Source: Paragordius varius (Eukaryota; Animalia; Nematomorpha). Taken from it: a stretch of DNA of 64,000 bases. The notes below the pieces were generated by a model. That model did not search any database. It had not been told where the DNA came from and saw only the letters and a program-made list of their open reading frames with translations. Positions 1-28,651 of the stretch are shown piece after piece. Location: NCBI GenBank assembly GCA_964247055.1, contig OZ176054.1, positions 8,370,001 through 8,434,000 of the forward strand, read 5' to 3'. The position numbers and the translations under genes are program-made. Positions within the stretch are counted from its first letter, which is position 1. The number at the start of each line of letters is the position of its first letter.

Positions 1-631
1 AGCTATTATTGTTAATATTTTCTTCCTTGTCGCACATTGTTACTGAACTCACAGTGTTCCATAGATACGTAGGTGCATACCATAAAATTGAATATAATAA
101 TGTAAATACTAACGCTATTCGAACATTTCTCAACGTTACCAAACGGTGATATTTTACGGCAAACCGAATGGCAATGTACACATTCAGGAAATACAAAAAA
201 TAAATGAGAAAAGTCCAAGTAAGCAGGGATTTAAAAATCGGGTAATGAATATATGCTATGTAAAATGTCCAATGTCGACCAAACCATAAGTTGGAATGCC
301 TTAAATCAATAAGGTTAACCGATTCCAACAAAGGTGACATTATCAAAGATAGGATGTTAACAACGTTTATCATGTAAAACCAGAACATTAGGTAAAGATG
401 GATATTAATACGCTTGTTTGAGTATGATGTGCTTGAATTAGCATTTAAAATATAATTGATTATGTTACGTTTCAAACCATTAGAATTATGAGCGGATAGC
501 CATATGAAATAAATACCCAATAAATTACCGATTAAACCTAAAATTATTATTGGGCTAGTTAATCCAATGACCCATATGTTTAATTTCTTGTTCTCGGATA
601 TTTCTTCGATAGAATAACATTTATCATTCAT
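1..631 (-). CDS. Divergent class A (FMRFamide/sex-peptide-receptor-like) GPCR, paralog A; 3'-partial, open to window edge
   Basis: Manual translation from ATG at 631: MNDKCYSIEE...LGLIGNLLG (TM1)...MFWFYMINVVN (TM2)...HYPIFKS...FLNVYIAIRFA (TM3)...SILWYAPTYLWN (TM4)...TMCDKE. There is no stop before base 1. Clearly homologous to the ORFs at 923, 6149 and 13324. Not listed in the ORF track, which shows only an out-of-frame 68-aa ORF here. Confidence 0.85.
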   Translation of the reverse strand, partial: MNDKCYSIEEISENKKLNIWVIGLTSPIIILGLIGNLLGIYFIWLSAHNSNGLKRNIINYILNANSSTSYSNKRINIHLYLMFWFYMINVVNILSLIMSPLLESVNLIDLRHSNLWFGRHWTFYIAYIHYPIFKSLLTWTFLIYFLYFLNVYIAIRFAVKYHRLVTLRNVRIALVFTLLYSILWYAPTYLWNTVSSVTMCDKEENINNNS

Positions 632-922
632 TAGAATATTTTAACTAACTCATCACTCTTCTAATGCTTCATTTTTCTAATTATAAGCTATATAGATAAT
701 CCTATGTCATGCAGCCTATAATTAAAAACAAACGGAATTCCATATCTCCTACACGCAAGGTTGGGTGAAAATCCTTTATCTTACAATAATAAAAAAATCA
801 ACTATATTTATAATTAGCTATCCCACATATACAATTAATATGTCTATATTTATCATCCATAAACATATAAAGGTATAATAATGATTTTTTTTAATTTGTG
901 TCTAAAATAAAATTAATTAAAA

Positions 923-2374
923 TCAATAAATAGGGTTATGAGGATGCATCAATATTTGACGTATTTCCTGTCGATAATAGGAGTTGAATATAAAGTTTAT
1001 GTAAAAGGTAGAACTTATATACACAAATTCCATAATGTTAAATATACAATAAATGAACAGTAAATTCTTGAGATCATGATATGGCACCAAAAAATCCATA
1101 ATCATTTGTATAACTGACACTGGCATCATGAGAACCACAAATTCGATTGTTAAAATAACCAAGGTTATTTGTTGACTCCGTGTAATTTTTGTAATTTTTT
1201 TGACACGTCGAAACGACGATGGTTGTAATAAATGCTTTGTTGGTTCATTGCGGTTTGGACTGATTTGTAGGATATTTTTACTATTTCTTCCACCGCCTTC
1301 TTCAATAACTTTTTCACTCATGATACCTGACGTACTCATTCCACTTTCTAGATTTGGAGTGGTGTTGGTACCGATCGGAGGAGTATGATTGGGGTTATTA
1401 GGGAATATTTTAGTGCTTAATTTACTTCTCATAATTATGGTTAATGTTTTGGATATCATAATAATAGTGAAGGGTAATATCTTTGTAAATAATTCACGTA
1501 ATATTTGATAAGCTATCCAAAGTCGTTTGGTAACATCTTTACCAGGCGAGAATATAAAATATCTGTAGTACGTAGGGGCATTTTCCTCCCTTGAAATTAG
1601 AAGAGACTTTGCTGTATTTTGTTTGGATGGGGTTATCATACACTGTTTAAAACTCACCATGTATCTCCATTTGATGGTTGGCATGTACCAAACAAATGAA
1701 TATAACAAAGTTATAAACATAGCTAAGCGTACATGAGGCAAAGTTAACCATTTCTTATATTTGAATGGGTATTTAACAGCAATCAATTGACTTGTAAAGT
1801 ATAGCACGTAGACGAGAAAGCCCCAAATCACGAATGGTTTAAAGATGGGATTATATACATGGGTATTGAAAAAGACCCAATTACGACTATACCATAGATT
1901 AACATGCCTTAAATCTTGGCCCCCAAAATATTCCATGAGTGGACTCAAAATGAGCGAACATGTATTAAATAAATTTATCAGGTAAAACCATTTCAAAAAG
2001 TAATAATTAAAGTTTGTTTTCGTGGTGTATGTAGTATTACGTTTCTCACTAAAACATGGACATATGTATGAGATCATCCATCTATTAGAAGATAAACTAC
2101 TATTTCGTTTGTAATGACTAGTGGTGGATTGTTGGTTTGGCATTGTATTTTCTGTCGTAGTTGTTAGGGCGGGGATATTGCTTCTAGTATTTTGTTTCGA
2201 TTTATCCCTCCTTTCCGATAAAATTATAGTGAAAGCTCCTAATGTATTTCCGGTCAAACCCAAAATCAGGACAATGATTCCAGCAACCCCGTAAATGTGA
2301 GCAAATTCTTGATTCTCATGAGCTATGTCTGACACATTTTGACACGCTAGCAATGTTAAATTGGAATGATTCAT
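923..2374 (-). CDS. Divergent class A GPCR, paralog B (single exon, 7 TM)
   Basis: ORF 923..2383 begins at TTG; first ATG is at 2374 (MNHSNLT). Hydrophobic segments: LGLTGN (TM1), WFYLINLFN, SQLIAVKYP, SFVWYMPT, KILPF, EFVVLMMPVS, TFYINFIFNSYYR (TM7/helix 8). Confidence 0.85.
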   Translation of the reverse strand: MNHSNLTLLACQNVSDIAHENQEFAHIYGVAGIIVLILGLTGNTLGAFTIILSERRDKSKQNTRSNIPALTTTTENTMPNQQSTTSHYKRNSSLSSNRWMISYICPCFSEKRNTTYTTKTNFNYYFLKWFYLINLFNTCSLILSPLMEYFGGQDLRHVNLWYSRNWVFFNTHVYNPIFKPFVIWGFLVYVLYFTSQLIAVKYPFKYKKWLTLPHVRLAMFITLLYSFVWYMPTIKWRYMVSFKQCMITPSKQNTAKSLLISREENAPTYYRYFIFSPGKDVTKRLWIAYQILRELFTKILPFTIIMISKTLTIIMRSKLSTKIFPNNPNHTPPIGTNTTPNLESGMSTSGIMSEKVIEEGGGRNSKNILQISPNRNEPTKHLLQPSSFRRVKKITKITRSQQITLVILTIEFVVLMMPVSVIQMIMDFLVPYHDLKNLLFIYCIFNIMEFVYISSTFYINFIFNSYYRQEIRQILMHPHNPIY

Positions 2375-3859
2375 AAAATTCAACTTTTTATCTTATTTTT
2401 CATATGCAACATAATTAAAAACCGTGGGCCAATTAAAAGAAATGACAAGTTAAACGTTTCTTAAAACATATTAATACATATGTATATATATTATAAACCT
2501 ATTGCTTGGCTTTTTTTGCTATTATACTACGTCTTTAAGATAAATTGATTATTTTGCAAATATATTTATTATATCTCGTATATTTTTTTCATAAATAGAT
2601 TAATCAATTTTAATTAGTAGTTACTTAGCTTAGCAAATAAATAAACAGACACTTTTTAGCACCAATTTGTAAAAATACAATAAAATGTATAGAAAGGAGG
2701 ATAAACAATGTATATTCATTAGGACCTAAAAATATTATTTTTGTTAATTAACAATATGGTTGGTTATGATTTAAATTATAACTATTTCCATTAGTTTTCT
2801 AATGGTAATGGATAAAAGATTTCAAAATTATTTATTTATTATTACTATTATTATTATTTGAAAAACTTTATTTATATTTGATTTATTCAACTCGCAATAT
2901 TTACATTTTTATTACTAAATAACTGTTTTCTTTTCTTACAGCTTTAAAAAATATATTTCATTAAGGTTTTTAGTTGAATTAGATCAAACATATCAGCGAA
3001 TATTTTACCAGGGTCTATCCTAGAAACGATAATATAATGTTAAAAACATATATTTTAGGAGATAAGTTAAAATTAATTGGTGTTAGTTCGATTCTAAATT
3101 TTCACTTGTATAAAAATTAAAACCTTTTTCTTTTAAAAAAAAGTTTAAAATCCATTGAATGCATATTTTTGAAAATGAGATTTAAAAGAAAATAGCGGCG
3201 TTACTTTTTAAGATATCCAAGGGATTTTACATATGTCTATGTTGGGATTTCACATTTGCTTAAAAACTTATTTCATAAGGTCTGAATTATTACTAATGTT
3301 TTTCGCCCCTTTAGCTGCTGTTTAAAAAATATTTTACAGAGAGAATATGAGTTGTTAAATTTAAAACATTTTATGTTTAAATTACTACATGATATAATTT
3401 GCCCTAGAATTCAAAAATATTCTAACATAATTTCAACTTGTATCGGAAATTTTCAATGCAAAAAGGAATCTTTGCATCATTTGGGTTTTTCACTTTTCAA
3501 TTTGACATCTTTTATATATTTTTATATTTTAAATTATAAATGGAAAAAAACAATACTGTAAAAATATTGATTTAAAAATGAAAAGGGGTCAATTTATAAC
3601 TATCTTGAATGAAACTAATTTCATTTTTTTAGAAGCAATTAAAAAGGTCATAATTTGTGTCTATTAGATTTATGCTGTAATTATATCGGAAATGTATTCA
3701 TATCAACACATCTGGGCACCTAATATTTTATTGTATAACGAGCTGTACTATGTCACGCTTCATTGTAACTTAATCCATCATATCATTAGAAATTGAGAAT
3801 ATACTTTTTTCGGCATAAACAGAAAAAATTTGGTCACAAGCAGCACGATTTTTATGTTT

Positions 3860-4715
3860 GGAGGCGTGTTTATCAGGCGGCTCTAACCATACGCTATTTA
3901 TTATAACTTTGAAAACTTTTGCTTTTATTATTATTTAATCCCAATTTCAGAGTTTTCCGTAAAGTGCTTGCAAGCCACTTTATTTGTATATAGCGGCATA
4001 TTCAACATAGGGAGCTGCCCCAACCTTTCCCTAATGAAAAAGCGCTTATTATTTATTCCTTTTATGGAGTTGCATGCAACCATTATTCTGTTGCAAAAAT
4101 TGCTTCAAAACCACGTTATTTTTGTTTTTATAATGGGTTTTAGACAGGGCGGAGGCCTATCTAACGGCTAATTTTATAAAACAAAGATTTTGCTCATTTT
4201 TACATGGTTTCGTGTCATAGAATTGAGCCTTAACCATCAGCTTATTTATAAAAAGCGCTTCACTAAATTTTTGCCTTTATGTGAGACACAGCTAAAACCC
4301 TTTTTCAATCTTTGTGGCATCATAAATTTTTCAAAGATTTCCTTCAAAGCACGTTATATTTATATTGGGGCCATTTTCTATAGGTGGTAGCCTTACCCGG
4401 AGGCTAATTTATAAAGAGCACTGAGCTAAATTGTTGCCCTTATACGGTGAAATCTAAGACTACTTCTGATTAAATAATGCCATTACTTAGCCAAAATCTG
4501 CTTCAAATATTTATTTTTGTAGACTTATTTTGAAAAAAATTGTCATTATACGGGGGAGAGGTTAAATATAGGGAGTAAAATATTAAAGTGAGCCGAGTTT
4601 GTTCGACGCATTGGTAAAAAAAATGAGAAAAATTATTATTTAATTCGAATGGGTCTACACGTTTTCCGAAAAATTGTCTCAAAGCCTACATTCCACATTT
4701 TTATAAATATATAGA
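3860..4715 (-). mobile_element. Degenerate non-autonomous Helitron (5' end intact, internal repeat units decayed, 3' end not found)
   Basis: Minus strand reads A|TCTATATATTTATAAAAATG at 4715, the same 5' terminus as the copies at 12251, 11221 and 15362. 4540-4715 resembles the family core, and 3860-4480 resembles the ~160/325-bp internal repeat. Left boundary approximate. Confidence 0.55.
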
Positions 4716-5498
4716 TTGTGAAATCGCCATAGTAAATGTCTTACATTTTTGCTACAATTAGGGTACTTAGTTAATTTTGTCACAAATCGAAATTTTAAAA
4801 TCCATATTCAAAAGCAACATCTATATCGAAACAGTCGGTTACGCTTTATTATGCAGAGCGGGGTCTTAATATTTCAAAATCCTTCTTAGAAAATTTCTAT
4901 TAAATTAGTGTTTTTATGTAACAAGATTTTTGTTTATCATATTTTAAATATTTAGTATCTCTTGAATATGCTTTAATAATGTAAACGATGTAGAGATCAT
5001 CGTAAAATAAAGTAAAAATAATAATTTATTGGTTCTCAAATTGTCGCAGACATTGATTTTATATTGCAAACATTTATCGTTACCCACTCAATTGATACTT
5101 TAATAATGTTTTACATACAATTATTGTGCATTTACGGATGTTTGACACATTCGATTATAATTTGCATCTTTATTCTTACAACAATAAAATGTTTACTAGT
5201 TGTCTTTGGAGTAAAATAAATGAAGAATATGCTGAAAACAATTTGCTTATAAGCCATCCTTTGTGTATATATATTAATTTTATGGATTTTAGTATTTATC
5301 AGTAAAAATATAATGAAAAGATTTAATACTTGATGTTAAGACATGCAATCTTTTACCTTTTCTTAATGCATTTCTTTTTTCAGAAAACCTAAAAACACTC
5401 ATGGTATTGTTTAACTTTAAAAAATTTTTTTTTATAAACATTGGGACTTAAAACATACAAAATAACATATTAATAATTTTAAAATTTGTCATTTAAAT

Positions 5499-5774
5499 AA
5501 GGGGTGGCCACAACGCGGCTCTTTAAAATATTTCTGTAACCCGCGAGAAATCTTAAATGCAAAATTTTACGAGTTCTAAGTAAAATTAATTTTTTAACAT
5601 ATTTTATGAATAAACGAATTTCGGAACTATCAAAAAATGTTAAAATTAATAATAGTTTTCTTATGGTTAAAAATTAATAAAATATTTGTTAATGCCCATG
5701 TATTTTTATGCAACCCACCGTTTTTTTTTATCTAAAAATACGGTCCACGAAGCCATTTGTATTGGATACCCTTG
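5499..5774. mobile_element. Possible decayed hAT-type MITE
   Basis: Ends AAGGGGTGGCCACAAC / TTGGATACCCTTG resemble the CAGGGGT..CCAAC TIRs of other MITEs in the window. No TSD match. Confidence 0.3.
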
Positions 5775-6148
5775 GCAGAACTCGACATTAAAACTAAATA
5801 TCGCAATCTAGGTGAAGTTTTATTTACAACATTGCAAAAAATCAACCTCGACTGTAGCAATAAACACACACACATTATGTATCCATATATAAAGTGAAAA
5901 CAATTTTAATGAAGTGCTAAAAGGAAAATCACTATACATTGACAAAAGTTTTCCGATTGTTAAATAGGTATTGGTAATATAGATATCTCGTTGTTTGCGT
6001 TGATTTTCGATATAAGCTGCGTACTGTTAAAATCAAGTGCGCATAACCATAAAAACGTCACAAATTATATAGATTTCCCTTGTGAAATTTGATATTTTAA
6101 TATATAAATATAGATATATGGTATATTAACCTAATTTTTTTGGACATA

Positions 6149-7393
6149 CTATTTTTTCCACAGTAATTTAATGTCTCGACGATAATAGCTATTAAAAATG
6201 AAATTAAAATAAAAAGTACAGCTAATGTAAATAAACTCCATAATGTTCATAATGGTATAGAGTTTAAGGAGTACACTATCCGGATAGTGTAAAATTAACA
6301 AATCCATAAATGATTGAATCAAGGAGACAGGGATAATAAGAATGACAAATTCTGTGCTTAGAATTAGTAATGTTCTTTTTTGACATTTAGTTATTTTGGG
6401 CTTTGCGCGTCTAACATGTTTTCTCCCAACAACATTAATGGTAGATGATGTTTTGGAAGAATAATGAGCTTTCGATTTGAAATTTGCTGAAACTGTAATG
6501 CTTGGTACGTCGGTGCGTATTGTGTTATTAACTCGCTGTGATATCTTATTTTTATAGGCGTAAGTTCTCATCCTTAGAACTATGGTAATAAGGAATGGCA
6601 AGATTTTAGTACAAAATTCTCTCGATATTTGATAAACCAACCATAGTGTTTTATGTTTTGGACGATGGATACCTAGCACGTAAAGCTGTTGAAACTTTTT
6701 CTCGTCACAATTTTCATACTGTATTATCTGATTCCATAGATACGTAGGTACATACCAAATAATTGAATATAAAAGCGAAATGGCCAAAGCTAATCTACTT
6801 TTGTTGAGAGTAACCCAAGTCTTATATTTGAAGGCATGGCGGACTGCAATGTACTGATTCAAAAAATAAATGACATAAATTAAAAAGCTCCAAGTTACGA
6901 ATGGCTTGAAAATGGGATTATGCGCGTGTGCCAAATATATTGCCCAGCGCTTTCCATAAGCAAATTTAATTTTTGTTGGATATATTAATCCGACACATTC
7001 GATCAAGGGTGAAATTATCAGTGTGGCCACATTGAGCAAATTTATTAGGTAGAACCATTGTAGAAAATAATGATTGTAATTTATTTTATGGTTTTTATGC
7101 GCGGAAAAGACAAAAAGCGCCAAAATATACTTTTTGAAATATTGTAAAAAATTGTTAGTTGAGAAATGTTTAGCATTATTTGATAAAACATTTTGTGATA
7201 TATCCGTGAATTTAATAATATATATTGCTGTAAAATTTCCAAATAGGCCTAATGGAATAAGTATGCTACAAACAATGATAACTAATGTGCAGACATATTT
7301 GCTTTCTGAAACTAATGTAGAAAGATCAGAACAATTGGGTGATTGTATGGTAATATCCATATAAAAATATCGAAAAATTAAGAATATTGTCAT
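6149..7393 (-). CDS. Divergent class A GPCR, paralog C (single exon, 7 TM)
   Basis: 414-aa ORF; an alternative ATG at 7360 gives MDITIQ. Motifs LGLFGN, WFYLINLLN, HNPIFKPF, NQYIAVRHA, SIIWYVPTYLWN, KILPF, EFVILIIPVS, TFYFNFIFNSYYR. Confidence 0.85.
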   Translation of the reverse strand: MTIFLIFRYFYMDITIQSPNCSDLSTLVSESKYVCTLVIIVCSILIPLGLFGNFTAIYIIKFTDISQNVLSNNAKHFSTNNFLQYFKKYILALFVFSAHKNHKINYNHYFLQWFYLINLLNVATLIISPLIECVGLIYPTKIKFAYGKRWAIYLAHAHNPIFKPFVTWSFLIYVIYFLNQYIAVRHAFKYKTWVTLNKSRLALAISLLYSIIWYVPTYLWNQIIQYENCDEKKFQQLYVLGIHRPKHKTLWLVYQISREFCTKILPFLITIVLRMRTYAYKNKISQRVNNTIRTDVPSITVSANFKSKAHYSSKTSSTINVVGRKHVRRAKPKITKCQKRTLLILSTEFVILIIPVSLIQSFMDLLILHYPDSVLLKLYTIMNIMEFIYISCTFYFNFIFNSYYRRDIKLLWKK

Positions 7394-8169
7394 ACATTAC
7401 TATATATTAAATAATGTATCAAATTTCATGTTTTTAAACCTTATACTATATTACAAATTGCTAAGATATTGCATCAACTTAAATGTTTGGCAGGATTTCA
7501 ATTTATTTATTTATATATTTTGGATATATAATAACCTCTACTAATACTAAAAAAGCAAAATTTTCAAAATATAAATCGAGGAGTCTAGAGAGGAATTTAT
7601 TTGTTTGAATGTATTTAAATACTATTGCTATCAACATTTTGGTATATATTGTATAAAATTTTGACGTATATTGCATATTTGGGATTGGACGTGGAATCTT
7701 ATAAGGGTTAGGCTAGTTTTATTTAAATAACGGCCTTTCTTAAGCGTATCGATCACCCTTCCTAACAATGAAAGTTTTTCCAACAAAGTTCTCATGATGT
7801 GGCAGTATAAAGGCTTGAGGCGGACGAAGTAAATATTACTGGTTTTTTTGGCATCTGCGTTCGCACAATATATAGTAACTGTTTTTGTCAGTTATTGCAC
7901 ACTTTAGTAATTGATGTGTAAATTATATTTGTCTCCTTGCGCTTAATTTTTGCTTCTTTCTGATATTGGAAAGCTCCTTAATAATACCTCATTTTTTGTT
8001 GCATGGTTTGCCGGACAGTATATTCTTATTGGTTCTTGTTCGTATAGATCCATATATTTATGCATGACAATTTAAGGCGTTTGCTTAACTTTTTATCAAC
8101 ATTATCCAGCTTTCTGCGAGGTGTTTAGTTAACCTTTTAAAATAAAACATAATTTTACTTGAAAACATT

Positions 8170-8930
8170 GGAACAGTGGCGCAGTTTTTGGCGGGTACCT
8201 CCTTACCTAGAGGCAGGTAAAAAAAAGCGTTGGGCAAATTTTTTGCCTTTATATGGGGAATACCTGGAATCATCATTCATTCCATATGTTTTTGATAGTT
8301 TTTGGAAGAATGGCTTCAAAACCAAATAATAGTTCAATGGCGGCGCATTTTTCAGGGCCTAAAACTTTACTTAGCCACTCATTGATATAATCTCCTATAA
8401 TAAAATATTTGTTTTTTAAGGGATAATAAATATTTTAAGCCCTTATTGAACTCACATAGTCTCATAGGTTTCCTGAAATTTGGCTCCAAAGGCATGTGTA
8501 TCGATATGGCGACGCAGTTTTGCGCGAGTAGCCCCCTAACCAGAAGCGAAACAAAAAAAACGCTCAATTAAAATTTTTGCCTTAATTCGGGTAATACCTG
8601 GAATCATAATTGATTCCTAATGCTCTATTGGAATTTTTGAGAAATCGCCTCAAAATTAAAAAAGTCATTCTATAGTGGCGCATTTATCAGGTCAAGGGCT
8701 TACTTAATGGGTTATTATATAAAACCGCTCTACTTAAATTTTTGCCCTAGGGATAATTCAAGCCCTTATCGAACTCATATGGCCTGATAAGTTTTCTAAA
8801 ATGTGCCTTTAAAATCATGCTGTATCGATATAGTGGCGCAGATATAAGCGGGTCGCCTACCCAGAGGCCAATATAAAAAAGACGTCCGATAAAAATATTT
8901 CCCTTTATAGGGAAATACTCAAAAAGTTTG
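8170..8930 (-). repeat. ~2.4 copies of the ~325-bp Helitron-internal tandem unit
   Basis: TACCTGGAATC anchors at 8261 and 8595, plus a degenerate one near 8915. This is the reverse complement of the array at 20295-21830. No termini seen. Confidence 0.7.
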
Positions 8931-10529
8931 CTCACTAGCGAAAAATGTCATTTTATATTTTGGATTTAAGCAATTTTTCGACATCATTTAGGACCATTTC
9001 ATTTTTTTAAATACTTAACGGCGGGTTTAAATCACTCCATCTTGTGAGAGCCTGAATTCAGGTTTAAAAAAAACAGTATGCTTAAATCCAAAACTTAGGG
9101 CTGTGCCAAGTTCTGATTCGGCTCTAATAATTTATATTAGTTAAGCTTAAATTTGATGTTAATTTTCTTTGTAATTAATAAAAAAAACATGGATAGTTTT
9201 GATTTATAACAAATATGGGCCATGTCACTTATATCTTTATTATAAGATATATCTTTAAATAAATGTTGTAATAATAAAATTGGACACATTTTGGAAAATA
9301 TTTTATACCAGCCAATCAGTATTTTAATAAATCGAACTATTTACCAGATAACACTTTTATGTATATAAAGCAGAAGATTTATTTTTTAATGGTGTTCACA
9401 AAAATTTATTTTAACACTTAAATACAGACATTCATTTTATTCTTTTCATTCAAATTGGTAACCTTCGGGACCTCTGCTCTGTTTAAAATCAAATATTATA
9501 AACATTATGGAGTTTGAAACCAGTGCAAAAGTTTGCACTTATTTAAAATTAATGCAACAAAATTTAAAAAAATATATAATTCAAAAGATTTTGATTTTAC
9601 TAATTTTCTGGCCCTCAAGGCAAAAATTCAGATAATATGGCATCCGTATTTTCTAAATATAAGTATACAAATAAACCGCTTTAGAAAAAAAATCACGATA
9701 TGTTGAAAAAATATTGCAATAAAAATATGCGTCGAAGTAGATACGCATGGAGCTTTTTTCAAAACTAAGTTTTATTGAGATTTTCACTTATTTCATTAGG
9801 ATAGGAGCATAAATTTAAATTGGTATTCTATATTATCAATTAAAATATGGTCTGAGTCAATAGTTAACCCTATTTAAATCAAAGTGTTGATATGAAAAGC
9901 TTATCATGATTTAATACATCACTTAGATAATTTGGCATTGATTTGTGAATAGGAGTTTAATTTAACTAATTTATTTATAGCCAAAATACTATTTTACAGG
10001 ATTCCCCAGAAATCTCCAAATAATATATTTGGTGTATTTAAAAATTTTTGATTGAGTTTGCGTATTATTAGTTATAATTTAATTTTATTTATAATTTTTT
10101 ATTCCAAAAATATTTACCAAAACTAAAACTTTTTTCAATTAGATTCACGGTATGATTTTTTAGTTGATATGGAAAATTCGATGCTATAATTAAAACCTAA
10201 ACCGTTTTTGTTGAAAAATAAAATAACTGTTTGCAGTCCTGGATTCGTCACCAAACCTGTCGAACGACATGTAAACAGTATTCAAGTCTTTACATAGTTT
10301 GCTATATAATTTAAAAAACTAGTAGAATAATATCCATCAAACTAAAGTCTATGTCTCAATTCTCTTACAACTGTGTTTTGTTAGATAATATTTTTGGCCA
10401 GTATTCTACCCATTGATAGTAGATTTACACCAATATAGCTATCCAACACAAATGGCTTTACGGGCCGCATTTTCGCACAAAATACGACTGAAAATTATTT
10501 TGGTAAAAAATTAATTATTAAACATTGTT

Positions 10530-12500
10530 TTTATGGCTTAGATAAAAAAGCTTATATTTTTTAAAGTTTTGTGACTTCTGGAGTCTAAAATCAAAAATAA
10601 AGTTTTTACTGGTAAAGTGTAGCATGAAAGCTTTTTTAAGTTAACTAGCGTAAATCTCGTCTACGCAGCCCGAGGAAGACCTTCGGACTTCTGGGGGGGC
10701 TATTTGAAATAAGGGACAATAAAATGATCCACATATGTGGATTATTTCGAAACATTATTTAATAGATATGATTTAATAGGAATTTTAAAACGGTGCATTC
10801 ATACTAATATATTGTTTAATTGGGGGAAAAATAAATTTAAAAAATTATTTTTGTGGACTTTGTTTTTTGAAAAAAATGGCATTTTACGGGGGGAGCGGAT
10901 AAAAAGAGGGCCCTTTTTAAAAAAGCGAGACGACTATGTTCGGCGCAATAGAAAATAAGTAAACAAAAATCATATTTGAAATTGAATGGTCCAACACGTT
11001 CTCCGGAAAATTGTCTCAAAGACACGATTTTTGTGGACTTAAAAAACCGTTTTTACACGGGGTGGGCCCGAACTGGGGGCTTATTTCAAAAAAAGGGCGA
11101 AGCTATTGTCGGGGCATTCATTAAAGATTATATTTTTTCGATATTTGGATTTGAATGGGTCTACCGGTTTTCCTGTACCAGATCACAAAGCCAGCATTTT
11201 CCATTTTTATAAATATATAGATTACCATAAATAATGTTTTATTATCCATCTATTTTTTAACATCCTATACATATGATAGATACTCCCTACTCAGCAGCTA
11301 TGATCAAAGAAACGCTTGACTAAAATTTTGCCTTTTAACAGGGAATACGAAAATTCTTTATTGAATTTTTACAGTCTTATACCTTGGGCAAAAAAATACT
11401 ATCAAAAAATTATTTTTGTGGACTTTGTTTTTTAAAAAATGGCATTTTACGGGGGTAGCGGGTAAAAGGAAGGCCTAAATCAAAAAAATGAGTCGACTAT
11501 GTTCAGCGCGATCAAAAATAAGTAAACAAAAATCATATTTGAAATTGAATGGTCCAACACGTTCTCCGGAAAATTGTCTCAACCCGTTTTTCACACGGGG
11601 TGGGCCCGAACTGGGGACCTAATTCCAAAAAAAGGCGAAGCTATTGTCGGGGCATTCATTAATCATTATGTTTTTTCGATATTTGGATTTGATTGGGTTC
11701 ACCGGTTTTCCGGAAACAGATCACAAAGTTATATGAGGAAGTTTTTAGCGGGTAGCTCCTTACCCAACAGCTATCATCAAAGAAACTCTTGACTAAAATT
11801 TTTGACTTTTATCAGGGAATACATGGAATCCATATTGAATTTTTACGGTCTCATACCTAGGGCGAAAAATAGACTTAAAAATTATTTTTGTGGACTTTGT
11901 TTTTTGAAAAAAATGGCATTTTACGGGGGGAGCGGATAAAAAGAGGGCCTAAATTAAAAAAGCGAGACGACTATGTTCGGCGCAATCGAAAATAAGTAAA
12001 CAAAAATCATTTTTGAAATCGAATGGTCCAACACGTTCTCCGGAAAAGTGCTCAAAGACACGATTTTTGTGGACTTAAAAAACCGTTTTACACGGGGTGG
12101 GCCCGAAATGGGGCCCTAATTCAAAAAAAAGGCGAAGCTATTGTCGGGGCATTCATTAATGAATATATTTTTTTGATATTTGGATTTGAATGGGTCTATT
12201 TTCCTGTACCAGATCACAAAGCAAGCATTTTTCATTTTATAAATATATAGATTATCATTTTGTTACCAAAATGTACATTATTTGCCTGTTGCATTAGCTA
12301 TTTAAAAAAATTTATAGAAAAAATGGCGGCAAAAAAGTTTGCGATGAGAATTTTACAATTTTACATTTTTTTAAAAAAAAATTTGTATAATGCCCTAAAA
12401 GGATAGCATATTTTAAATTTATCCTATTACTTTAAATACTTCTTTAGATGTTCAAATTTTAAATAGCTCGGGAATATACAACTATTTCAAAAGATAATAG
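10530..12500 (-). mobile_element. TTAA-family MITE split by the Helitron composite insertion
   Basis: Removing 10645-12251 reconstructs AAAATGATAA|TTAACTTAAAAAAGCTTTC on the minus strand. This matches AAAATGTAAATAATTAACTATAAAAAGCTTTC inside the intact copy at 22957-23465. Outer boundaries approximate. Confidence 0.6.
10645..12251 (-). mobile_element. Composite non-autonomous Helitron: one complete 577-bp unit (10645-11221) plus two ~470-bp head-to-tail units
   Basis: 5' A|TCTATATATTT at 12251 and again at 11221. 3' ...CTCGGGCTGCGTAGACGAGATTTACG-CTAG|T at 10645. A ~340-bp core is repeated three times. Inserted between A and T with no TSD. Confidence 0.8.
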
Positions 12501-13323
12501 AGATTTAATCTATAGCAAATTTACTAAAATTTTGTAACTAGCATTATTTTTAATTAATAATTTTTGCATTTTGATATTTTTTAAAATTTCTTGTGGGCTG
12601 CAAAAATATTTTAGATGGCCGCGTGTAGGACACCATGAAATAAAAATTTTTATGTGCATATGACTAGTATAAATATTTAATTATACCCAAAAATTTAAAA
12701 TTTAAGTATCCTTGGCTAGTTGTTATATATATAAATATTTTATTTATTCTAAAATCATATAGGAAAAATTTTTACACATAAATTTGGCATGACAATGACA
12801 AGTGAAAATTACTAAATTAACACGCAATCTTTAAGATATGTGATGAAAAGTTGGAGTCAAACAATTTGCATGCAGGGAATATTTTTATTTTTAGTATTAA
12901 TTATAGATAAAACAATTAGGCCAAACTTTAAAAATAATTTTATCAGCGTCTGTTATTTATTCGTTGTCAAGTAACAACAATCTGATAAGCACAAAAATGA
13001 TATGTATAATTTATAGTAAAAATAAAATAATTACTTTTGCAATAATATATAGGGATGTATGCACCTTTAATTAATTTTCCTCTAGGATACGCGCTAAAAT
13101 ATATTTTGTGCGATAGCTTTATGATTGTGTAATATCTTTTTGTTATTGATTTCCTACAAAAGTGCTAAGTATTAGAGTCATAATTTGGCTTATGGGGAAC
13201 AACATATAAGTCTCAATATCTTTGCATTTTTTTATGTTAAAAATCGATTTATCCGCCAAGATATATTGATTTGAATAGTTGTTTTGTAGTAAACGCAACT
13301 CAACATTCCCAAGTTTAACAGCT

Positions 13324-14631
13324 ATGGAGGTTGATACACAATCTCCCTTTTATAAAACAAATAACTGTGTGAATTTTAGGGATATCGAAATATTTTCTCC
13401 AGGCATAGTTACATTCTTGGATAAGATATTATCGATTGCACTATTTGCACTCGGAATTTTAGGTAATACACTTGCATTGATTATACTACATGGCACACTT
13501 ATTCGATACAGATCAAAGCGACAAAGAACTAATATGAATCGATATATTTTAACATGGTTTTTCGCCATAAACCTGTTAAATACGCTATTTATGATCCCTT
13601 CACCCATAATCAAACTATTTGGCAAAGGTTACAATTACAAAGTTTGGAACAGTTATGGTTTAATGTTGTACCAAGCTAAAATACATTACCCACTTACAAA
13701 ATCTTTCGTGAGTTTTGGCTTCTTAATTTACGTCTTATATTTTGCCAATCAAAGTATGGCAGTAGCCTTCCCAATATACTATCACCATAATGCGACACGC
13801 ATCAAAATTAATGGTTTTATATTACTTTGTTTTGTTTACAGTGTAATATGGTATGCTCCTACATACCTTTGGTTTAGAGTTACGTCCCATCTTGTGTGCC
13901 CCACATCACCCTCTGGGGAAGGGCAAATATTTTACTTTTACACATCGACAAACCCCATAGGTCCAACCCCTTTGACTGGGTTACTATGGAGAACCTATGA
14001 AATAGCCAGGGAAATGTTGCTCAAAATATTACCCTTTACATCTATCATCGTTTGCAAAGCTTTGATGATACGACGGGGTAGACGAACCGAACTCCGACCA
14101 ACCAATGATACCTTAAATAGTTTGGGCATAACAGCAAATGCCAACGGTCATATGACAGGAGTTACGCAAAAAAGCATGATAAAGGATAACATACCACAAA
14201 TAATAGTTCAAACCTTAAACAGTTCGATCACTAGTATGCAGTATATATCAGATCAAATCACAACGAGTATTGCTAAGGTCAAACCCATAATCAAAAGCAC
14301 GAACGCGACGCAAAATAATGAATTTATATCACAGCTAAATCGAAAATATTTACGAAGGAAATTTGAGACTCGCCAACATTCCAAAACACTTTTTATATTG
14401 ACGATAGAATTTATCATATTTTTGTTGCCTATCTCAATCATGCAAATGATCAAAGATTCAATAGATCATATTTTACCCTTTAAACGCAGAGCCAATATTT
14501 TCATATTTCTGACATTGTTAGAATACGTATATGTAACATGTACTTTTTACATCAATTTCATTTTTAATCAATCATACCGTACGGATGTTATAAGGTACAT
14601 TCGATGTCAAGAAGATCTCCCGTTATCGTAA
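13324..14631 (+). CDS. Divergent class A GPCR, paralog D (single exon, 7 TM), opposite strand to A-C
   Basis: ORF track starts at TTG 13279; first ATG is at 13324 (MEVDTQ). Motifs LGILGN, WFFAINLLN, HYPLTKSF, NQSMAVAFP, SVIWYAPTYLW, KILPF, EFIIFLLPIS, TFYINFIFNQSYR. Confidence 0.85.
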   Translation: MEVDTQSPFYKTNNCVNFRDIEIFSPGIVTFLDKILSIALFALGILGNTLALIILHGTLIRYRSKRQRTNMNRYILTWFFAINLLNTLFMIPSPIIKLFGKGYNYKVWNSYGLMLYQAKIHYPLTKSFVSFGFLIYVLYFANQSMAVAFPIYYHHNATRIKINGFILLCFVYSVIWYAPTYLWFRVTSHLVCPTSPSGEGQIFYFYTSTNPIGPTPLTGLLWRTYEIAREMLLKILPFTSIIVCKALMIRRGRRTELRPTNDTLNSLGITANANGHMTGVTQKSMIKDNIPQIIVQTLNSSITSMQYISDQITTSIAKVKPIIKSTNATQNNEFISQLNRKYLRRKFETRQHSKTLFILTIEFIIFLLPISIMQMIKDSIDHILPFKRRANIFIFLTLLEYVYVTCTFYINFIFNQSYRTDVIRYIRCQEDLPLS

Positions 14632-15361
14632 AGAAAACTATATGATACAAATTAAATATAATGAAAACTACCATTCAACTCAGCAAACTCAATCTTTTTT
14701 GCTTATACTCTACTTAATCTAAATGTCAAAATTTTTTTGTTGTTATTTAAAAAACAGAAATATTAGCTTAAATCTGGCACAAATAAATCTCTTAAATCTT
14801 CCCAAATCTAATTCAATCCCATATAGCTTTGTAACCAAAAGTTTTATTTTCAAATTAAATCAAATATTTTTTGGGCATTTTCATGAGTTTACTTTATAGT
14901 AAACTCATTTTCAGTCTATGAATCTAAAATATGCAAGATATTCAAAAAAAGCACATTGATTTGATAAACTTCACTTGAAAAACAATGGGTTGTATGCCGA
15001 ATTAGTTGTAATAAATAAATTAAACATTCTTATAATCTATAATTCTATTAAACCAAAACAGTGAAGATATATTCAATTTTGTCCCAAAAAATATTTAATT
15101 AAAATATTAAAATGGTAACAAGTTTAGTTTGAGAAATTCAATTTTGTTAAGTTTCGTTAGTCTTTGTGTTGACACACTGATGAAAAGTATTTAATTGTGT
15201 AAGATCGAACCATAAGTTTGTATACAATTTTGCACAATAAACGCTATAATTTGACTTTTTAAAATCCAAATGAATTCAGCCATGGAATACTCGAGTAAAT
15301 CGTGAGCCACTGTAATCACGGGACTTTCAATTTTAATAATCTCTTTAGTTAAATTATAAAA

Positions 15362-15950
15362 TCTATATATTTATAAAAATTGAAAATGCTGGCTTTGTGA
15401 TCTGGTACCGGAAAACCGGTAGACCCATTCAAATCCAAATATCGAAAAATTATAATCAATAATGAATGCCCCGACAATAGCTTCGCCCTTTTTTTGAAAT
15501 AGGCCACCAGTTCGGGCCCACCCCGTGTGAAAAACAGTTTTTTTAAAAACATAAGTCCACAAAAATCGTGTCTTTGACACAATTTTCCGGAGAACGTGTT
15601 GGACCATTCAATTTTAAATATAATTTTTGTTTACTTATTTTCGATTGCGCCGAACATAGTCGTCTCGCTTTTTTAATTTAGGCCCTCTTTTTACCCGCTC
15701 CCCCCCGAAAATGCCATTTTTTCAAAAAACAAAGTCCACAAAAATAATTTTTTGAATCTATTTTTCGCCTAAGTAAACAATATATTAGTATGAATGCACC
15801 GTTTATAAATTCATATAAGATCATAGCTATTAAATAATGTTTCGAAATAATTCACATATGTGGATCATTTTATTGTCCCTTTTTTCAAATAGCCCCCCAG
15901 AAGTTCGAAGGACTTGCTCGGGCTGCGTAGCAGCAGGAGATTTACGTTAG
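15362..15950 (+). mobile_element. Complete short non-autonomous Helitron (589 bp)
   Basis: Begins A|TCTATATATTTATAAAAATTG and ends GCTGC-GTA-GCAGC hairpin...ATTTACG-TTAG|T. Near reverse complement of 10645-11221. Confidence 0.8.
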
Positions 15951-27109: not shown

Positions 27110-28651
27110 ATGTCTGATACCCTTAATTTTTCCGGGGACGTAACATCTTCGCTGTTATCATTTAACAAAATGGCAAACGCTAATGATTGTTCTTCAACGT
27201 ATACTGAATCCGATGAATACTCCACTTCTTTTTTAGATCAAGGTTCTTCATCTTTTGAAATTTTTGGGAATCTGGGGACAACAGAACCAAGTATCATTAA
27301 AAATAATTCATCCGGGAAACCAGAAATATCAAAATGCTCAGAGTCCGAAACGTTGGATAACTACAAAATTGGAAGGAAAGTGGTGTCAACAACATCTTCT
27401 CAATCTTCGCAACCAAAAAAATTTGTTACAAACTCTAGTCGGTACTTCAAGTGTGGCCGCAAATTGAACGATGACGAAATGAATCGCATCCGTATGAAAG
27501 TTAATTCTCGTGAGCGCAAACGTATGCATGATTTGAATTCGGCCCTGGACGGATTGCGGGAAGTTATGATGCCATATTATCTGCATAATGTTTTACATGT
27601 GGATGGCACAAATCATCCTAATTTAGCAAACGTCATGTCTGATACCCTGTCCGAAGATAGTTACGTTAATAATGGGCGCGAAAAAAATCACCCCAATTCC
27701 GTAATGCTCAATCCGAAACATGGGACATCAGTTAGAAGTATTACACCAACGTCAACCATATTGAATGGTGAGTTACAAAGCGCAAACGGTAGCAAAAAGT
27801 TATCTAAAATAGCAACTTTACTCCTAGCCCGAAATTATATTTTGGCCCTGACATCCACGCTTAAAGAGATACAAACGAAATTGGATGGAACGTCCAATAC
27901 TGAGGTAATTACAAAAATTTTGCAAGAAAACCATGTTATGGATTCTGATTTAGTTTCTCTGCCTAATGTTCATAAACCATCTACATCTCCAGAAAGTCCT
28001 AAATTTCCACATAAGAACAAAGCTTCCACAAAAAAGACATTAACTGCCCCCTTTTCATTACAAAATATTACTGAAAACCCCTATCCTAAAAATGACTTAA
28101 TCAAACATTCAAACAACAATAATGTCGATACTGCCACTAAACGAAAAGATTATTCGATATCGGCTCTGATATCACCTAATGGGACAAACTCCAGCTTATT
28201 CTCAGCAAACCCATCAAATAAACATTGCAATGAAAAGGATGTGGTAACGCGAAAACGAATTAAAACTTTCGAAAACTTTTTACCAAACACAATGTTAAAT
28301 GATACTTCCAAGGGAGGAAACCACCGCTTAAACAACCTTAGCTCAAACAGTGTCATTAAAGAAAATTTGACGAGAAATACTAAACAACATTCCCTATCAA
28401 ATATTAATAATCATCACAGATCCAATAATAACCAATTATCAACTCATAAATATAATATAAATTACCCATTTTTACCTACAGATTCAGGTGCTATGTATGC
28501 AAGTCATATGCAATATTGGCTCCAACAATACGCATATATGAATGGTGCAACTCTCCCTAACTCAAATCAAAATACGAAAAAACCATTCAATTTCGCAAAT
28601 TTTATAAATCCCAGCTCTAATCCCATGCCAACCGATTTGAAAATAAATTGA
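27110..28651 (+). CDS. Olig: Olig-family bHLH transcription factor (single exon, expanded HLH loop)
   Basis: [29 protein letters not shown] ... [18 protein letters not shown] is nearly identical to the Olig2/3 bHLH as I recall it ([28 protein letters not shown]...[18 protein letters not shown]). Confidence 0.9.
   Translation: [513 protein letters not shown]

Follow-up and report, generated by a model that had tools for sequence, protein, structure and literature searches.

What kind of protein is encoded by four adjoining intronless genes that resemble the GPCRs (G-protein-coupled receptors) of class A and in which several of the residues regarded as the switches of that class have been replaced? 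The question is raised by the left end of a stretch of 64,000 nucleotides of the horsehair worm Paragordius varius (Nematomorpha; assembly GCA_964247055.1, contig OZ176054.1, positions 8,370,001 to 8,434,000 of the forward strand), which is hereafter called the window. Profile searches, structure prediction, phylogeny and the comparison of paralogs revealed that these genes are part of a single-exon receptor family, which has about 60 members in the same genome. Taking the evidence as a whole, we lean towards the view that they are intact ligand receptors, which would still signal through a rewired core.

The four genes and their class A origin

The genes are listed below with their transmembrane helices (TM) and extracellular loops (ECL) where needed, the three-letter motif at positions 3.49-3.51 and the five-letter motif of TM7.

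1-631, minus strand: gene 1, N-terminal 210 codons from TM1 to the start of ECL2, with the Met at 631 and the frame open to the window edge; NVY; TFYFN
923-2374, minus strand: gene 2, single exon, 483 amino acids from the ATG at 2374; SQL; TFYIN
6149-7393, minus strand: gene 3, single exon, 414 amino acids from the ATG at 7393; NQY; TFYFN
13324-14631, plus strand: gene 4, single exon, 435 amino acids, or 450 when the frame is taken from 13279; NQS; TFYIN

The listing of open reading frames (ORFs) and their translations bore out the four open single-exon frames that had been described in a first account of the window made without database searches (the sequence-only reading). The remainder of gene 1, including TM7, lies to the left of the window (G000:C5:8369447-8370000), and the full copy in the same genome encodes 395 amino acids (L003:1492-2676:-). 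For gene 2, a longer frame of 486 amino acids starts from a TTG (923-2383, minus strand). The true start of gene 3 is probably Met12 at 7360, because the first 11 codons have no counterpart in the alignment of 24 paralogs and because the contigs of the DNA run X1 revealed a 1-nt insertion polymorphism at 7372, in the N-terminus. All four coding regions are single uninterrupted frames of 395-483 codons in an AT-rich window (24-36% GC in 2-kb bins). At about 28% GC, some 8% of random codons are stops, so frames of this length are far beyond chance; for 414 codons the chance of an open frame is about 1e-15.

When searched alone, none of the four window proteins matched the Pfam model 7tm_1, even at an expect value (E) of <=10, and a word-index protein search with gene 3 gave no match. 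Such empty searches fit a family that is unrelated to GPCRs and that consists of multi-pass membrane proteins resembling class A by composition only. The more sensitive comparisons refute this explanation, which we consider to have practically no probability left. The profile A1, an alignment of 24 full-length paralogs from the same genome, matched only class A receptors among the solved structures of the PDB, with histamine H1 as the best (E 1.8e-6) and A2A, 5-HT1B, alpha-1A and NPY2R as further matches, and 11 of the 24 paralogs matched 7tm_1 singly (best E 4.3e-10). A second alignment, A2, was composed of 24 canonical receptors from the distant profile matches; E/DR-Y/F/C is present in all 24, while their TM7 reads N-F-x-x-Y in 23 and T-F-x-x-Y in one. 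The comparison of A1 with A2 using hhalign gave a probability of 99.7% and an E of 1.5e-26 over 330 columns, in a helix-by-helix register from TM1 to helix 8. The AlphaFold2 model of gene 3 that was built on A1 (predicted local distance difference test, pLDDT, 79.8; predicted TM-score, pTM, 0.78) has seven long helices, a beta-hairpin in ECL2 and helix 8, which is the class A fold. Foldseek aligned this model with hundreds of class A structures at probability 1.00 and with a target TM-score of up to 0.80, the best matches being the peptide receptors SSTR1, MCHR1, apelin, NTSR1 and delta-opioid (E about 1e-7 to 1e-6). The structural signature of the class, which the sequence-only reading had described as kept, was borne out in the same alignments from which the motifs were read: N1.50 is present in 44 of 46 family members, W4.50 in 41, P5.50 in 43 and P6.50 in all 46.

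That reading had also assigned the genes to a scaffold like that of the FMRFamide and Srw receptors. This placement aligns well with the PDB profile matches, the 7tm_1 matches, Foldseek, hhalign, the phylogenetic tree and the language-model neighbours of the family, which are Srw-type clusters. The name of the parent branch is based on the NFxxY signature, on the matches of outside relatives to the Srw hidden Markov model (HMM), on RefSeq names of the parent-branch receptors (‘probable G-protein coupled receptor B0563.6’ or ‘AH9.1’) and on the Atlas cluster names. The model 7TM_GPCR_Srw itself matched none of the 24 paralogs at E<=1 and, when run on the genome, found five other, canonical loci and no family locus. 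The HMM searches that had been proposed were thus positive for 7tm_1 in a part of the paralogs, although in none of the window proteins, and negative for Srw. As judged from these comparisons, the four genes can be classified as intact members of a class A-derived family of the Srw/FMRFamide-receptor-like branch.

Replaced and retained residues

The motif register was taken from three methods, i.e., the HMM alignment to the H1 receptor, the hhalign comparison of A1 and A2, and a per-position table from a MAFFT L-INS-i alignment of 46 family members with 12 canonical or intermediate relatives. In the HMMER alignment, the D-R-Y of the H1 receptor was paired with the family N-Q-x (‘N-Q-l’). The hhalign register set G-N1.50 on G-N, D/E2.50 on the invariant Asn118 (gene 3 numbering), E/D-R-Y on N-Q-x, N7.45 on Tyr, N7.49-F7.50-x-x-Y7.53 on T-F-Y-x-N and the F8.50-R of helix 8 on Y-R. 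A second conserved Asn (N121) is located three residues past N118; both sequence alignments set 2.50 at N118, and there is no acidic residue in TM2 under either choice. The by-eye alignment of the sequence-only reading (N at 2.50, an altered E/DRY and TFYxN at the place of NPxxY) was thereby reproduced by three methods. The possibility that an intact motif had been placed elsewhere was also addressed: a pattern scan for E/DR[YFHCW] and [ND]PxxY/F found neither anywhere in the four window proteins.

The replacements recur across the family. Among the 46 members, the family-specific states are N2.50 (42), Q3.50 (33), Y7.45 (39), T/S7.49 (39), N7.53 (39) and K3.33 (38), and a near-invariant F-N pair at 7.56-7.57 has been gained relative to the canonical relatives. 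Conversely, D2.50 is absent in 45 of the 46, R3.50 in 44 (two have Arg) and Tyr7.53 in all of them. F7.50 is found in 46/46 members and E7.42 in 38/46. The canonical NFxxY relatives already have F7.50 and no W6.48, and both states are inherited from the parent branch and are not losses of the family. The claim that all of the switches had been lost therefore holds as a family-specific change for 2.50, 3.50, 7.45, 7.49 and 7.53, but not for the exchange of P7.50 for F or for the missing W6.48. Of the conserved charged residues in the upper bundle, R5.42, E5.43 and E7.42 are likewise common to the family and its parent branch, while K3.33 is specific to the family. The extracellular N-terminus carries an invariant Cys, and the Cys of ECL2 is near-invariant. 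The network of the sodium site, DRY and NPxxY has thus been exchanged for another conserved set of residues and not eroded at random.

Intermediate states are present among living sequences. In the Gordionus protein P0032, N2.50, T7.49 and the F-N pair are combined with a retained D-R-F and an F at 7.53, and the basal Gordionus members P0025 and P0028 keep R3.50 (N-R-F). Relatives with the full DRY and NFxIY were found in both hairworm genomes (L033 here and P0031 in Gordionus). L033 (C5:10.04 Mb; DRY, NFYIY) is 633 amino acids long with a loop of more than 300 residues. L032 (G000:C5:8473500-8476500), about 40 kb to the right of the window, keeps DRY in an ORF of 263 amino acids that runs from late TM2 to beyond TM5 and ends before TM6. 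These two are the closest canonical-type neighbours of the family in this genome.

The family also differs in the length of its loops. In canonical receptors, the first intracellular loop (ICL1) is normally only a few residues long and N1.50 and 2.50 are about 30 residues apart. In the family, and within the window in genes 2 and 3, ICL1 is expanded and variable, with a family-wide distance of 34-113 residues between these positions, and P5.50 and P6.50 are 73-217 residues apart.

A separate observation concerns TM7. In P0082, a weak hit (E 4.3e-7) to a fragment of 206 amino acids from a JGI metagenome contig, NPxxY is replaced by T-F-F-I-N; the change may have occurred there independently, or the fragment may come from a relative that has yet to be sampled.

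Family distribution, phylogeny and selection

A homology search of the same genome gave 81 matches and a later search with the family profile gave 83; merging the latter by eye left about 65 loci (E<=1e-5), which are spread over contigs C1-C7. Forty loci were found at E<=1e-50, most of them with one open frame of 400-600 codons, while a handful of family loci are fragments or contain stops. The family is about equal in size to all of the remaining 7tm_1-type loci in this genome, for which 85 matches were obtained at the exon level. Within the region of the window, the family profile matched the four genes only, and the nearest locus to the left (C5:8235546) is about 134 kb away. The ‘cluster of four’ of the sequence-only reading thus stands in that the four genes adjoin, but they are a small part of a dispersed family, and the array that it expected beyond the left edge is reduced to the C-terminal half of gene 1.

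An exhaustive profile search of 1.84 billion protein representatives gave 21 matches at E<=1e-30 and 35 at E<=1e-10. Because every strong hit that was traced (26 among the 32 best) comes from the horsehair worm Gordionus sp. m RMFG-2023, the family looks specific to Nematomorpha, as had been claimed, and no close orthologs with the same substitutions in other phyla were found among the traced strong hits. The Gordionus entries are named ‘unnamed protein product’ or ‘uncharacterized’. The first match outside of the hairworms is P0030 (E 1.6e-14), a canonical receptor with ERY and NFYIY, which matches both 7tm_1 and Srw (E 1.4e-9). The core Gordionus members that were traced exist only as CAK entries; RefSeq XP or UniRef entries were seen only for the peripheral relatives P0022, P0029, P0032 and P0063, and among the traced members the family core looks absent from RefSeq and UniRef. 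The GC content of the Gordionus genome (26.9%) is similar to that of the window (10.1101/2023.06.26.546503).

In the phylogenetic tree, the family forms one clade (Shimodaira-Hasegawa-like approximate likelihood ratio test, SH-aLRT, 100), which is nested inside the NFxxY group beside the hairworm receptors that keep DRY and NFxxY. The family and the NFxxY receptors together are split from the NPxxY outgroup, also with an SH-aLRT of 100, in what was a quick search with long branches. Several orthogroups span both species, while one clade of nine members is restricted to Gordionus and one of ten members to this genome. Since genes 1 and 3 group with L002, at a distance of 0.48 Mb, whereas the partner of gene 2 is Gordionus P0001 and gene 4 falls in a subclade other than that of genes 1-3, the four-gene cluster is a mix of old lineages and not a recent tandem burst. 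The ortholog of gene 2 is a Gordionus tandem pair (CAK9289990, which is P0001, and its neighbour); BLAST gave an identity of 41%, while the value was 48-53% when pairwise-aligned residues were counted and 52% on the columns used for the tree, and the synonymous sites are saturated, so the two worms are distant relatives. P0001 likewise consists of one exon, as does its tandem paralog, which is located 3.7 kb upstream. The ORFs of the closest canonical relatives in this genome start in the middle of TM2, and therefore these genes have at least one intron. The single-exon structure of the family would be compatible with a retrocopy as its founder.

Where the synonymous sites were informative, the ratio of non-synonymous to synonymous divergence (dN/dS) was low: 0.15 for L026 and L021 (83% amino acid identity), 0.13 for L017 and L019 (dS about 2) and 0.19 (NG86) or 0.28 (YN00) for the Gordionus tandem pair. 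Across the 24 paralogs, the mean pairwise identity was 0.30-0.40 in the helices, 0.40 in the second intracellular loop (ICL2) and 0.34 in helix 8, compared with 0.12-0.15 in ICL1, ECL2 and the third intracellular loop (ICL3). By these measures, selection keeps the seven-helix (7TM) bundle and the cytosolic face of ICL2 and helix 8. The purifying selection proposed by the sequence-only reading is in agreement with the ratios of 0.13-0.28 in the unsaturated pairs and with the conservation of the derived residues across two genera.

Possible function, comparable families and local context

The reading that we favour can be set out as a series of steps. The genes would have multiplied through duplications, both tandem and dispersed, and expanded separately in each species, as in chemoreceptor or neuropeptide-receptor repertoires. 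The ligands might be environmental or pheromonal cues or RFamide-like peptides. The signal would then be passed through the conserved face of ICL2 and helix 8, most likely to one of the few heterotrimeric G proteins of the worm, with a polar network of N2.50, Q3.50, Y7.45, T7.49, N7.53 and the F-N pair at 7.56-7.57 standing in for the canonical one. The likeness to chemoreceptors in the style of evolution is drawn because the family is large, its copies are both tandem and dispersed, there are species expansions, and the N-terminus and ECL2 are variable. The pocket charges R5.42, E5.43, E7.42 and K3.33 suggest either that the ligands are chemically alike or that charges pair inside the receptor. 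The non-canonical signalling that the sequence-only reading had proposed is plausible by analogy with the roles of the canonical residues in other receptors. It is tempered by the new conserved set of residues, by the fact that ICL2 and helix 8 are among the best-conserved parts, and by the retention of about five G-alpha loci and one arrestin-like locus in the genome. Furthermore, some chemoreceptor families without DRY still use G proteins, e.g., nematode ODR-10 through ODR-3.

Several points weigh against this explanation. In class A mutagenesis, D2.50N, the loss of R3.50 and the loss of Y7.53 each weaken G-protein activation, and given these effects retained coupling is an assumption. The conserved pocket charges, most of which are inherited from the parent branch, speak against a broadly tuned odorant repertoire. 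The youngest duplicate pair, L009 (G000:C3:2939902-2941215) and L010 (C3:6086356-6087678), which share 95% protein identity at a distance of 3.1 Mb and represent a very recent dispersed duplication, gave a dN/dS of 0.78 with a dS of 0.026, a ratio based on few events. The window genes themselves are saturated at synonymous sites, where NG86 and YN00 fail (dN 0.42-0.61). Only closer pairs elsewhere in the family were informative, and the constraint on these four genes is inferred from the conservation pattern and the open frames. Polymorphism was assessed in a small sample, that of the reference against the contigs of run X1. In gene 3, five synonymous and 11 non-synonymous changes gave a rough pN/pS of about 0.6; the non-synonymous changes were confined to loops, with six of them in ICL1, four in ECL2 and a single one in ICL2, a hint that the loops are only weakly constrained. 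In the partly covered gene 2, three synonymous changes and one non-synonymous change were found. Finally, the candidate RNA runs X6-X8 of the species (19-29 million letters, guessed to be RNA) gave no contig on 1400-7393, a region that is covered by the DNA run X1. None of the five small runs with this species label that were guessed to be RNA shared sampled words with the region; five DNA-type runs from two studies contain such words. As the RNA runs are tiny and their type was only guessed, they say little and are no evidence either way.

Alternatively, the genes would be decaying pseudogenes or dead retrocopies of peptide-receptor genes whose frames are open by chance. The single-exon structure, in contrast to the closest canonical relatives with at least one intron, the lack of RNA support and the few loci with stops or in fragments would fit such an origin. 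However, the open frames of 395-483 codons at a stop frequency of about 8%, the same derived residues in two genera despite the saturation of synonymous sites between them, the dN/dS of 0.13-0.28 and the far higher conservation of the helices than of the loops are not what decay predicts. Because the dN/dS, the conservation pattern and the polymorphism taken together contradict it, we consider it very improbable.

Atypical or decoy receptors, which would bind ligands without activating G proteins and would act through arrestin-type recruitment, scavenging or scaffolding, are a more serious alternative. The absence of R3.50 in 44/46, of D2.50 in 45/46 and of Tyr7.53 in 46/46 members is what it would lead one to expect, as the loss of residues of this type defines the known G-protein-silent class A receptors, and an arrestin-like locus is available. 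Nevertheless, about 60 diverging decoys would be an unusual number for scavengers, chemoreceptor families without DRY such as that of ODR-10 still use G proteins, and a conserved ICL2 and helix 8 would fit any transducer. We rate it as unlikely, although worth keeping in mind. Still less probable, in our estimate, is that the proteins are 7TM proteins that work independently of ligands, such as locked receptors, co-receptors, chaperones or trafficking partners, in which a possible K3.33-E7.42 pair could fill the pocket. K3.33 (38/46) does face the conserved E7.42 (38/46), a salt bridge between them is possible, and even paralogs that have diverged strongly share the charges of the pocket. Yet the N-terminus and ECL2 are the most variable parts (identity 0.14-0.23), as would be expected for differing ligands, and a family of about 60 members is hard to reconcile with the role of a housekeeping partner. 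Our order of preference is therefore coupling through a rewired core, then an arrestin-type or decoy role and, last, a role without a ligand. A bolder version, which we put forward only tentatively, is that a selected family of about 60 receptors works without D2.50, R3.50 and Y7.53, either through a new internal network (N2.50-Y7.45-T7.49-N7.53-Q3.50) that still drives a G protein or through a transducer of another kind; the phylum may, in addition, have its main chemosensory repertoire in this family. The nematode Str and the insect gustatory-type (7tm_7) models had no match in the genome, a search that is weak for exon-split genes, which gives a weak indication that there is no obvious rival repertoire of either kind.

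Comparison with known systems revealed both shared and derived features. With the Srw/FMRFamide-receptor-like branch, whose E/DRY or E/DRF, N-F-x-x-Y receptors were the best distant profile hits, the family shares F7.50, the lack of W6.48, R5.42-E5.43, E7.42 and the Y/F-R of helix 8; it differs in the replacement of D2.50, R3.50, N7.45, N7.49 and Y7.53, in the gain of K3.33 and of F-N at 7.56-7.57 and in the expanded ICL1. The closest parallels were described in flatworms, i.e., the intronless, phylum-specific PROF1 family with remnant class A motifs (Zamanian 2011, PMC3261222), the Srf, Rho-L and Rho-R orphan families, including Srfb (Saberi 2016, PMC4862687), and the rhodopsin-like fwRhods (McVeigh 2018, PMC6114109). 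Like these, the hairworm family is phylum-restricted, intronless, large, highly diverged and orphan, has only remnants of the TM2, TM3 and TM7 motifs, and was missed by gene models and BLAST. PROF1-II has H/N at the position of the TM2 Asp and F after the TM7 Asn, as does the hairworm family, whereas in the PROF1 groups TM3 still reads D-R/K-x and position 7.49 is still N/D (Table 3, PMC3261222). Both of the latter have been lost in the hairworm family, which is thus more derived at the switches. Membership in PROF1 was rejected; no direct homology was detected, the traced strong hits were all from Gordionus and the motif pattern differs. One flatworm cluster was found among the language-model neighbours of the family and is a lead only. 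The parallel with PROF1 suggests that intronless, motif-degenerate class A expansions may arise repeatedly in parasitic worm lineages.

Two better-known groups differ more. The nematode chemoreceptors (Str, Sra and Srg) are large, fast-evolving, tandem families of 7TM proteins without the canonical motifs, which use G proteins where tested; their genes are typically intron-rich, and Nematoda is the sister phylum. The hairworm genes, in contrast, are class A-derived and single-exon, and the genome has no Str match. The ACKRs and C5aR2 also have a naturally altered DRY in an intact class A fold. Each of them, however, is a single gene that has close canonical paralogs and in which D2.50 and NPxxY are intact, whereas the hairworm family replaces all three sites across about 60 genes.

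Little work has been done on the horsehair worms, a phylum whose members are known to steer the insects that they parasitise towards water, and no description of a GPCR or chemoreceptor family for Nematomorpha was found in the searched literature. Because the family is about as large as all of the other rhodopsin-type loci and its members have no functional name, it is a prime candidate for the sensing of mates, hosts or water. The study of receptors gains from it dozens of conserved variants made by nature, with the Asp of the sodium site, the Arg of DRY and the Tyr of NPxxY all replaced, and with the living intermediates (P0032, P0025 and P0028) one can test directly in what order these changes came and what follows from them. 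If a maintained family does work without the switches, nature would have performed an experiment from which the class A microswitches emerge as dispensable.

As for the surroundings, the whole window contains four ORFs of at least 150 amino acids; three are receptor genes 2, 3 and 4, and the fourth (27110-28651, plus strand) is a single-exon ORF of 513 amino acids for a basic helix-loop-helix protein (Pfam HLH, E 8.3e-12). Elsewhere in the genome, L035:2078-2998 (G000:C5:11447577 region) is a hydrophobic ORF of 306 amino acids, without family motifs by eye and unmatched by the genome profile search; if it is a receptor, it would belong to a different family. An interspersed repeat with a length of about 500 nt, which is no part of the receptor genes, occurs between and around them:

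4528-4724: partial copy, between genes 2 and 3
10694-12250: three tandem copies, upstream of gene 4
15353-15898: inverted copy, downstream of gene 4

Gene 4 is thus bracketed by inverted repeats of this element. Sharp peaks in the read depth of run X1, at 4600-4799 and at 5600-5799, mark it as a high-copy one.

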